A stretch of 64,000 bases of DNA from Paragordius varius (lineage: Eukaryota > Animalia > Nematomorpha). The DNA is taken from contig OZ176052.1 in NCBI GenBank assembly GCA_964247055.1, positions 7,688,001 through 7,752,000 on the forward strand, given 5' to 3'. The notes under the pieces are model-generated. The model was not told where the DNA came from. It was given only the letters and a program-made list of their open reading frames with translations, and did no database searches. Shown here piece after piece: positions 29,690 to 33,928 of this stretch; the first letter of the stretch is position 1, and each line of letters opens with the position of its first letter. A program made the translations under genes and the position numbers.

Positions 29690-31543
29690 TTTTTTATCTC
29701 TAATATATTTAATCTAATCTTGTCAACGAATCGCATCCCTAATGATTGGTCAAAAAGCACCATCATACCCATTTATAAAAACAAAGGAGACATACTCATT
29801 TGTTCCTCCTATAGACCACTACAGTTGTTGGAACACCCGTTTAAAATTTTTGCATTATTGAATCAAAACTAAGATCAATCATTAGTATACAGGAATCACA
29901 ATATGCCTATAAACCAAACAGTAGCACAATTGATGCAATCTTCATTTTGAGAAGATTGCAAGAGAATTATTTAGCGAAAAATAAAAACTCTATCATGTTT
30001 TTTTGATTTACAAAGGGCCTTTGATTGTATCCCCAGGAAGTTAATCACATACGAGCCAATAATGTAGATGATTGGATAATCAAATCAATAGAAATGATGT
30101 ACTACAAAACAACAAACTGCGTCAGATTAAAACTAGGCAACACAGCTTTTGTTCCAAACGAATCTGGTCTTCATCAAGGGTCCATCCTAAGCCCTCTATT
30201 TTTCATTTTAATAATGGATAACCTAACAAAAGATATAAAACAAGGCCTACCATGACTTATCTATGCGGACGACATTGTCCTCACTGCAACATCAATGGAA
30301 GAATTAAATCTAAAATACAACACATGGAAATCACACTTAGAAAAGGGTGGAATGAATATAAATATAAGCAAAACAAAGGTGCTGATAACGGGTGAAACTG
30401 TATATGAACGACCTAAGTGAACGAGTTTAATATAGAAATAAAATTTATTATCTCAAATTGTCATTTTATAACTGATTCCTTTGTGATTGTATAGGTTTAT
30501 TTATATATTTTAGCAAGGATAATTGACAATAACTAAATTGGAATACTATTTGTATTAAATACAATGTCACATAAAATATCCATATATATAAATAAAATGT
30601 CATATAAAATATAAATAATAATAATAATAATTTAACTTAAGGTTATAAACTTGGCAACTAACTTAATTAGAATACCATTTGTAATAAATACAATCATACA
30701 AATTATCCATATAAATAATAATAATTTAACCTAAGGTTATAAAGAATTAACACAGTTTCCATGTGGAGTATGTGATTTAGATGTTAAACTCAATTCAATC
30801 CTATGTACATCATGCAATAAGTAGGTACACAAAAAGAGCTAACTTATAAAAGGGACATTAATTTAACAATGATAAATTTATATGTGAATCATGCAAAAAT
30901 AAAACAATAAATCACTCACCCACTTCAATGAATTACCTTTATATGGCAGACGCCAAAATCGAATTGGTGAATAATTTCAAATACTTGGGCGATGTCATAC
31001 GTTGTCTAGGTGGAATAAACCAATCAGTTAAATATAGATCCCAACAGGCTTGGGTAAAATATCATCAACTTAAAATAGTGCTCAAAAATAAACACATATC
31101 AGGAAAAAACAAAGGTTTGATTTACAAAGCGGACATACGTCCCATACTCCTGTATGGAAGCGAGACATGGCCGCGATGACAGATTCAATCGAGAAAAAAC
31201 TAATGAACATACAAAAACGGATGCTAAATTTATTCGACCCCAATGAGTTAAATTCAAATTTGCATAAACTGTACCAAATTGAACCTTTAAATGTTATGTT
31301 CAGAAAAAATAAGCTTAGATATTTCGGACACATCAAACGTGCTCTAGAACAATGGACAAATAAAATTTTATCCCTACATCCCGAAGGTAACAATTGCAGG
31401 GGTAGACCTTCATTTAACTGGGAAAAAAACAATAAATAATGATTTAAGTGTTGTTAACATTGATGATAACGCCTGGCAGGATCGCAAATATTACAGACAG
31501 CTTCTATACGGATACAATGGCTAGCCATTACACAAAGACGATA
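29690..31543 (+). mobile_element. 5'-truncated, mutated RTE-clade non-LTR retrotransposon, with 338-bp insertion at 30419-30756
   Basis: RT motifs [47 protein letters not shown]; Cys-rich insert PCGVC..SILCTSCNK typical of RTE; multiple stops and frameshifts. Confidence 0.9.
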
Positions 31544-31791
31544 TATACATTTATGTAATATTTGGTAGTCAAAAGTTAATCAGAATAATTATTTCTATAA
31601 TGCGCTTACAAGCCAGAAATGTATATTTAATATCGCCCAACATTAAGACGTAATTAAATAATTTATGCTTGTAGTCAGGGGTAAAAACTAACCGAAAAGA
31701 TGATAAACTGTCCTAATAATTCGTTTTACAGAAAACTATATATAAAATTAAGCCATAAAATGCAAATTATTTATTCAATTGTTTTCAAATG

Positions 31792-32335
31792 CTACATATT
31801 GCGGGTTGGGAACCAAGGGATCAGAACTTCGGCAAATTTTTTTCCTATGAAAAATTAAAAAAATGAATTGTACTTGGCATTGGTGGAGGCAATTGATCTT
31901 GATGATTTCGCATATACCATAAAATCCTGTTTCTTTCCTCATATTGGTGTATGTAATAATATTTAACACCGTACCAGGTTGTAGGACCGACAGCAGCAGC
32001 ACCAATAATGTATGGAGAAAAAGCTAGATATAATGTTAATTATAATTCTAACTTATAAAGCGTGGAATATTTGTCAAATTCCTATATGAACATATAACTA
32101 TTGTCATAAGCGCCAAAGTATGAAAAGTGTAATATTTTTGTTGATTCCTAACATAATCATCGGTAAAAAGCATTTTATCAATTTTCTTTTCTAAATCTGA
32201 CCGTTTATCTTTAGAAAAATCGTGGGATTGGGTTGGTAGATGCACGTCCTCATCCCAATTTGGATAAATCGGAGTAATACCGAATCTAAAAGCCCCATCA
32301 AAGCCAAAATATTGACTTTCGTCATAAAACTTCAT
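31792..32335 (-). CDS. NDUFC2: NADH dehydrogenase 1 subunit C2 (B14.5b)-like; exons 32335-32053, 32023-31874, 31844-31792 (161 aa)
   Basis: Removing two 29-nt GT-AG introns gives ...ERNRILWYMRNHQDQLPPPMPRKKFAEVLIPWFPTRNM*. This matches the remembered NDUFC2 C-terminus (human YMKLHPEDFP..KKTYGEIFEKFHPIR) and has two upstream hydrophobic segments. Confidence 0.75.
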
Positions 32336-32409
32336 AGTAAAAACATGCGTTTGTTAACATGCACAGACAAAAACATATTGATTTTGGCAAAAATTCAAAT
32401 TAAAGTTTT
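32336..32409. promoter_or_regulatory. 74-bp gap between divergent start codons of NDUFC2-like and POLE (bidirectional promoter)
   Basis: ATG at 32335 (-) and ATG at 32410 (+). Confidence 0.7.
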
Positions 32410-33928
32410 ATGGACTCAGAATATCAGCTTATAAAACAAAAAACTTTGTTGTCCATTGATGAATATTATGGTTATTATGATGATTGCTATGAATATGAAA
32501 AGATTGGTTGGTTAATTAATATTCAACCGGTATAATTAAAATTATTTTTAAGACCGTTTGTGTAAGCGAAAAGAATACCATAAAAAGCTGTGTAAATTAT
32601 TATTTTCTGGAAAATAATGGGCGAAAATTTAAGTGCACATTGCATTACAATCAATATTTTTATTTGAAAGTAGATCCACATTTTTTCAGAGAAATCGTTG
32701 GATATTTAAATAGAAAATTTCAAGGAATCATCTATGATATTAAATATGAAGCAAGGGAAGACCTGGATGCAGTACCTTTATATATAAAGATAGAAACCGG
32801 ATCATTTATTTGGCTCAAAAACCATATATCTCAAGTTGTTATTTGAAAATGTTCAAAATTTAATGAAAGTTAAAAAGATGTTAAATCCAATTATACGGAG
32901 AAACAAAGAATTCTATTTATCCCAAGATGTCTTTACCAATCGGTACAATTGAATTAGCTTTATTTTGATTCAAATATCTTGAAAGACGTTCTGTATCGAG
33001 ATAAGAAATCGAATCATTTTTATAGGAATCAAAAACTTTTTTTCAGAACAGTTTTGAATCAAAAAAGAACTAAAATCAGTTCCAAAATATTTTTTAGAAT
33101 ATAATGTTTTTTTATATGAATAATAAAAGTATATTTTTTTCTATTTTTCAGAATAGCACACTATTTTTTATGGCCTATATATATATATATATATATTATA
33201 GTTTTTGCGGGTATCTATCAGGGTAAAAATTTTAAATTAAAAACCAATAGAACCGGAAATTTTTTTGCAAAAAAGCAGGAATTAGCAAAAATCTCTAGCA
33301 GAACCTTATCGGCTAAAAAATAATTTGGAAGAACCGAAACTAAATCCAAAAACGGTCTTGATAAAGATTCAACCCTTAAATAGATTATTTTACCGATTAC
33401 ATTAACATATGCTTTATTGTTTTTTTGTTAGCAATATTTCAGTGTCTAACATTCAAGTAATACAAAATACTAACACGGTGAATACTGCTCACCAGAACAA
33501 TGATGATTTAATTGCAACACATATTCTCGATATGTTGGAATATGATGTACCATATTATATCCGCGTATCCATAGATTTAAAAATATTTGTCGGTCATTGG
33601 TACAAGGTGAAGACTAAAACGGGTCAAGAAGAGCATTTAAATCCAGAAATAATTTTGATACCGGATCTTGAGGAAAGGCCTGTAAGTTTTTTTTTTATTT
33701 TGTATAATATACATTTATATCGGCGTAAAAATAATGCATTAACATTTTATTCCGGTTTTTGAGCTTTATGATTGAACACATTTGAATTTGGTATGAAAAA
33801 TATATCATTTCGCTTTAAAGAAGATTGATGGCTATCAAATATATATTTTATAGGATAATGTGAAAAAATATTTTTTTAATAAATGAAGAATTTTTACTGG
33901 TTTGCACAACATTTCCAATTTTATCGTT

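Follow-up and report, generated by a model that had tools for sequence, protein, structure and literature searches.

We find that the minus strand of positions 31792-32335 is best explained as a single-copy nuclear gene for NDUFC2 (B14.5b), consisting of three exons separated by two 29-nt phase-1 GT-AG introns and encoding a protein of 161 amino acids. We estimate the probability of this explanation at about 0.9. All positions are given in the coordinates of the window, by which we mean the entire 64,000-nt stretch of DNA that was analysed. The gene itself is a routine one, a complex I accessory subunit being expected in any respiring animal. Introns this short have been published for only two other animal groups (PMC13644364), and the present gene provides a clean case of micro-introns since its second junction is exact to the residue when compared with an orthologue.

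The coding sequence starts with the ATG at 32335-32333. Exon 1 (32053-32335) contains 94 codons plus one base and is followed by intron 1 (32024-32052), the 150-nt exon 2 (31874-32023), intron 2 (31845-31873) and the coding part of exon 3 (31792-31844), which consists of two bases, 16 codons and the TAG at 31794-31792. Summed by script, the three exons come to 486 nt, corresponding to 161 codons and the stop codon. On the same strand, 16 nt past the stop, an AATAAA hexamer (31770-31775) may act as a polyadenylation signal. The two intervening segments had been proposed in an initial annotation of this DNA as 29-nt, phase-1 elements on the minus strand at 32052-32024 and 31873-31845, and a script confirmed their positions, their GT and AG ends and their phase. 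Each has a GC content of 17%, compared with 32%, 39% and 43% in the exons. Both begin with GT and end with AG, and their removal restores one reading frame; judged from these features and from the comparison with the orthologue described below, both segments are very probably genuine micro-introns. Exon 1 codes for transmembrane helix 1, preceded by a conserved extension at the N-terminus, exon 2 for transmembrane helix 2 and the first part of the C-terminal helix, and exon 3 for the NDUFC2-type C-terminus. Hydrophobic peaks were found at residues 68-84 of exon 1 and residues 1-19 of exon 2, so that the predicted protein combines a double-pass topology with the conserved C-terminal tail.

The gene is not recovered as a unit when open reading frames are taken at face value. 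The ORF-track entry at 31775-32005 is in a frame that differs from that of exon 2 and from that of exon 3, and direct comparison of this ORF with the orthologue from the horsehair worm Gordionus revealed no similarity. It had been described as largely in the wrong frame; the wrong frame is correct, while the qualification falls short, as the ORF is wholly out of frame with both exons. ORF-based or default gene finding splits the gene into a 95-aa stub and this wrong-frame ORF. Because the ORF track is broken in this manner, NDUFC2 could wrongly be counted as missing when hairworm-type genomes are surveyed for 'gene loss'.

The identity of the gene was established through one intermediate sequence. 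Using exon 2 as a query against 1.84 billion representative proteins, we obtained three matches, two of which were repeat proteins matched via several short stretches. The only non-repeat match among these representatives was a 111-aa protein, P0002, aligned over residues 4-49 with 43% identity (E 4e-5). P0002 is a RefSeq entry from Gordionus sp. m RMFG-2023, XP_065321021.1, titled 'uncharacterized protein LOC135928486 isoform X2'. When P0002 was used in a word search, isoform X1 (P0004) was recovered, which at 161 aa is exactly as long as the spliced model. On the Pfam family NDUF_C2 (PF06374), for which the gathering cut-off is 24 bits, P0004 reaches 44.4 bits (E 2e-11, profile positions 13-109). 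In a PDB sequence search it also matches the NDUFC2 chains of solved complex I structures with E values of 1e-7 to 2e-3, among them 8b9z_d from Drosophila (E 9.5e-8), 5xtc_g from human (E 1.2e-5) and 6g2j_d.

All three exons align with P0004 in order. By BLASTP, residues 1-90 of exon 1 correspond to P0004 residues 1-87 (45% identity, E 3e-25), residues 4-49 of exon 2 to residues 99-144 (43% identity, E 7e-13) and residues 1-16 of exon 3 to residues 146-161 (9/16 identical, 56%, E 9e-7). In the reverse direction, a six-frame search of the 110-Mb genome that contains the window with P0004 found this locus alone, exon 1 with an E value of 6e-19 and exon 2 with a match that spans 31872-32018 and P0004 residues 97-145. 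The two proteins are thus reciprocal best matches and collinear over their full length. The NDUFC2 gene is single-copy in this genome, since P0004 matches no other locus. The short exon 3 was also evaluated against all 127,906 six-frame 16-mers of the window. No other 16-mer matches the Gordionus C-terminus as well as the exon-3 peptide, which has nine identities and a BLOSUM62 sum of 60; the runner-up has six identities and a sum of 20. The peptide starts 2 nt past the acceptor AG, and its stop codon coincides with the end of the orthologue. Given this uniqueness together with the placement of acceptor and stop, the result exceeds what chance would produce. The proposal in the initial annotation that removal of both segments gives a 161-aa protein with an NDUFC2-type C-terminus is therefore borne out by collinearity with the 161-aa P0004 and by the Pfam NDUF_C2 and PDB NDUFC2 matches of the latter.

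The window protein was queried one exon at a time throughout, and several other searches were silent. Exons 1 and 2, each taken singly, gave no NDUF_C2 match in Pfam at E<=10 and no NDUFC2 chain in the PDB sequence search. Since the single exons have no Pfam match, the family assignment is made by way of the hairworm orthologue. The whole 110-Mb genome, searched in six frames with PF06374, returned no candidate; the control genomes were equally silent, which makes this search uninformative. A word search with exon 1 returned no candidates and no transcript-derived proteins, a weak negative because the Gordionus protein, which has at least three 5-residue words in common with it, was missed as well. 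Neither exon 2 nor exon 1 gave anything usable in the ESM Atlas, and a search for a processed retrocopy that would display the splice turned up only the locus itself. From the alignments described above, we conclude that the locus is an NDUFC2 orthologue, with family membership reached through the single intermediate orthologue from Gordionus.

Isoform X1 of Gordionus LOC135928486 is the sequence nearest to the protein predicted here. Both proteins are 161 aa long, have the same start and carry two hydrophobic helices in the same places, and they have in common a tail that reads Arg-Lys, then Glu-Val, Pro-Trp-Phe-Pro and Arg-Asn. The tail of the window protein also resembles that of Drosophila NDUFC2. 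The window protein is more divergent than its Gordionus counterpart, and its single pieces miss the Pfam model and fly and human NDUFC2. Both hairworm-type proteins have an N-terminal extension of ~45-50 residues, whereas the fly and mammalian chains (115-123 aa) are without it. This extension lies in the best-conserved stretch between the two proteins (56% identity over residues 1-69), and it found no match in Pfam, in the PDB or among the Atlas clusters. Gordionus was the one relative to emerge from the searches, and its genome and the window genome alike have a GC content of ~27%.

We also compared the two junctions with the orthologue residue by residue. At junction 2 the split codon A|GA encodes an Arg that stands opposite Arg145 of P0004, with zero residues missing or extra on either side. 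Junction 1 is consistent with P0004 as well, but a 3-residue indel of uncertain placement lies close by, so this junction is less exactly supported than junction 2. Of the canonical junctions available there, intron 1 as modelled is nevertheless the only one that loses none of the residues aligned with P0004. Some information on intron positions can be obtained from the Gordionus isoforms. Isoform X2 lacks residues 46-95 of X1, corresponding to 150 nt, which places one exon boundary of Gordionus near codon 45/46 and a second within codon 95 or directly behind it. Intron 1 of the window gene splits codon 95 and is either coincident with the second of these boundaries or three codons away from it, depending on where the indel is placed. 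Exon 1 of the window gene runs uninterrupted across the boundary at codon 45/46, and because there is no intron at that position an exon skip of the X2 type is impossible in the window genome. The 150-nt exon skipped in Gordionus X2 holds transmembrane helix 1, which leaves a one-helix protein. The literature yielded nothing usable on where the introns of NDUFC2 lie in other animals.

When the window was scanned for ORF-bridging segments of 18-60 nt, 158 candidates had GT..AG ends, compared with 139-205 for decoy dinucleotide pairs. Because there is no excess over the decoys, the scan lends no statistical support apart from homology, and no length distribution can be derived from it. Introns 1 and 2 were also considered as duplicates of each other; by an eye count they match at ~15/29 positions, which is near chance for AT-rich sequence, and the idea was rejected.

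Micro-introns are also required by the neighbouring gene on the opposite strand, as the initial annotation had noted. The first three coding exons of POLE lie on the plus strand at 32410-32943 and are interrupted by segments of 23 nt (32530-32552) and 22 nt (32772-32793). The pieces that flank the 22-nt segment match human POLE (9ne9_A) at residues 46-114 and 116-162, and are thus contiguous in the protein. Both segments have GT..AG ends; the first POLE exon alone found no match in the PDB. The observation that a second gene needs such introns had been put forward as an argument against an assembly error, and we have counted it in the same way.

Three other explanations of the NDUFC2 locus were weighed. 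The introns could be real but spliced in the cell at other junctions, giving a shorter protein. The available sites are GT 32091 or GC 32061 joined to AG 32024 (68 or 38 nt) for the first intron and GT 31873 joined to AG 31827 (47 nt) for the second. These pairs likewise keep the reading frames open, and the Gordionus orthologue is itself alternatively spliced into isoforms X1 and X2. However, every alternative junction costs the protein 3-13 residues that have aligned counterparts in Gordionus, some of them in the conserved tail, and only the 29-nt pair yields 161 aa versus 161 aa and an Arg opposite Arg145. We consider the use of other junctions very unlikely. Still less probable, in our estimate, is an intronless gene in which assembly or sequencing indels have produced the frame changes. 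Intron 2 does hold runs of seven and five T, and a one-base error anywhere in its positions 20-26 might suffice to connect the frames of exons 2 and 3; such a read-through, however, would insert ~10 residues at a point where neither Gordionus nor Drosophila has any. At junction 1 no single indel can bridge the gap, because the exon-1 frame stops at bases 3-5 of the intron and the exon-2 frame opens only at 32039. Both segments also have GT..AG ends and 17% GC, and POLE on the opposite strand needs like treatment.

The third explanation, to which we give the smallest weight and which we regard as highly improbable, is that we are dealing with a decaying copy or one that is not expressed, or else with a membrane protein peculiar to this lineage that merely resembles NDUFC2. 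The failure of single exons to reach Pfam or PDB NDUFC2 directly would fit this, as would the N-terminal extension of ~45-50 residues that fly and human NDUFC2 do not have. Decay is difficult to reconcile with three intact frames, canonical splice sites and a single-copy locus. A mere resemblance is likewise opposed by an identity of 43-56% to the orthologue over all exons, extension included, the orthologue being a bona fide member of NDUF_C2. A single-copy NDUFC2 gene with two 29-nt introns remains the explanation that we prefer.

The two NDUFC2 introns raise the upper end of the micro-intron range in the window to 29 nt. The four micro-introns measure 22, 23, 29 and 29 nt, and the identical length of the last two had been taken to hint at a preferred 29-nt size class. 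This suggestion does not hold up: the shared length is most likely a coincidence, because POLE next door has introns of 23 and 22 nt. None of the four lengths is a multiple of three, and retention of any of the introns leads to a premature stop or a frameshift; 0/4 multiples of three is expected by chance about 1 time in 5, and four introns are too few to show avoidance. Ciliate introns of the Paramecium type are 20-35 nt long and are policed by translation and nonsense-mediated decay. The micro-introns of the window are like them in that none is a multiple of three and retention causes a stop or frameshift, and differ from them in belonging to an animal with standard stop codons.

Among animals, a 2026 survey of 51 genomes reported introns of <30 nt from two groups only, myxobolid Myxozoa and Dicyema japonicum (PMC13644364); nematomorphs are unmentioned in that survey (PMC13644364). 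The introns described here are like those of myxobolids and Dicyema in being GT-AG, AT-rich, shorter than 30 nt and located between conserved exons of housekeeping genes (PMC13644364). In both sets, by our own reading, candidate branch-point adenines are also found ~10-12 nt ahead of the 3' AG. They differ in that the median intron in those animals is 22-27 nt (PMC13644364) and that the host here is a hairworm-related ecdysozoan. We believe it likely that the 29-nt segments of NDUFC2, together with the 22-23-nt segments of POLE, are members of a genuine class of spliceosomal introns shorter than 30 nt in an ecdysozoan related to hairworms. Myxobolid Myxozoa and Dicyema would then be joined by a third, independent animal lineage in which such introns occur, and in this lineage they would exist alongside long introns and not be the outcome of wholesale genome compaction.

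The expression of the gene can be pictured as follows. Transcription would start in the short zone common to NDUFC2 and POLE, and the spliceosome would remove both 29-nt introns in vivo, possibly with the adenines 10-12 nt upstream of each AG as branch points. Splicing would join helix 1 from exon 1, helix 2 from exon 2 and the conserved C-terminal tail from exon 3. Human NDUFC2 is a double-pass hairpin next to ND2 whose C-terminal helix extends to NDUFA8 and NDUFB5 (PMC7699753). By analogy, the 161-aa product would take its place in the ND2 module of complex I, as the mammalian subunit does, and form a helical hairpin beside ND2 in the membrane arm; its C-terminal helix would reach NDUFA8 and NDUFB5, as in the human protein. 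If intron 1 is retained, the exon-1 frame ends one codon on, at the TAG at 32050-32048; if intron 2 is retained, nine extra codons are followed by a stop at the acceptor's own TAG. An unspliced transcript would accordingly be cut short directly after exon 1 or, with intron 2 left in, have the conserved tail replaced. In humans, a stop-loss variant of NDUFC2 in which other residues take the place of the last four stalls the assembly of complex I and leads to Leigh syndrome (PMC7645371). As this variant indicates that the tail encoded by exon 3 matters, both splices would be needed for function.

Two further features were observed near the ends of the gene. Just downstream, two overlapping plus-strand ORFs (30928-31439) resemble by eye the C-terminal end of the polyprotein of a non-LTR retroelement, a reading that a Pfam search of these ORFs did not support. 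At the other end, the divergent start codons of NDUFC2 (minus) and POLE (plus) are separated by a spacer of merely 74 nt (32336-32409), which presumably serves both genes as a promoter zone. On the minus strand, a further ATG at 32376, upstream of the main start codon, opens a 14-codon frame whose TGA (32334-32332) overlaps that start codon as ATGA (window 32332-32376). This upstream ORF may lie within the NDUFC2 transcript.
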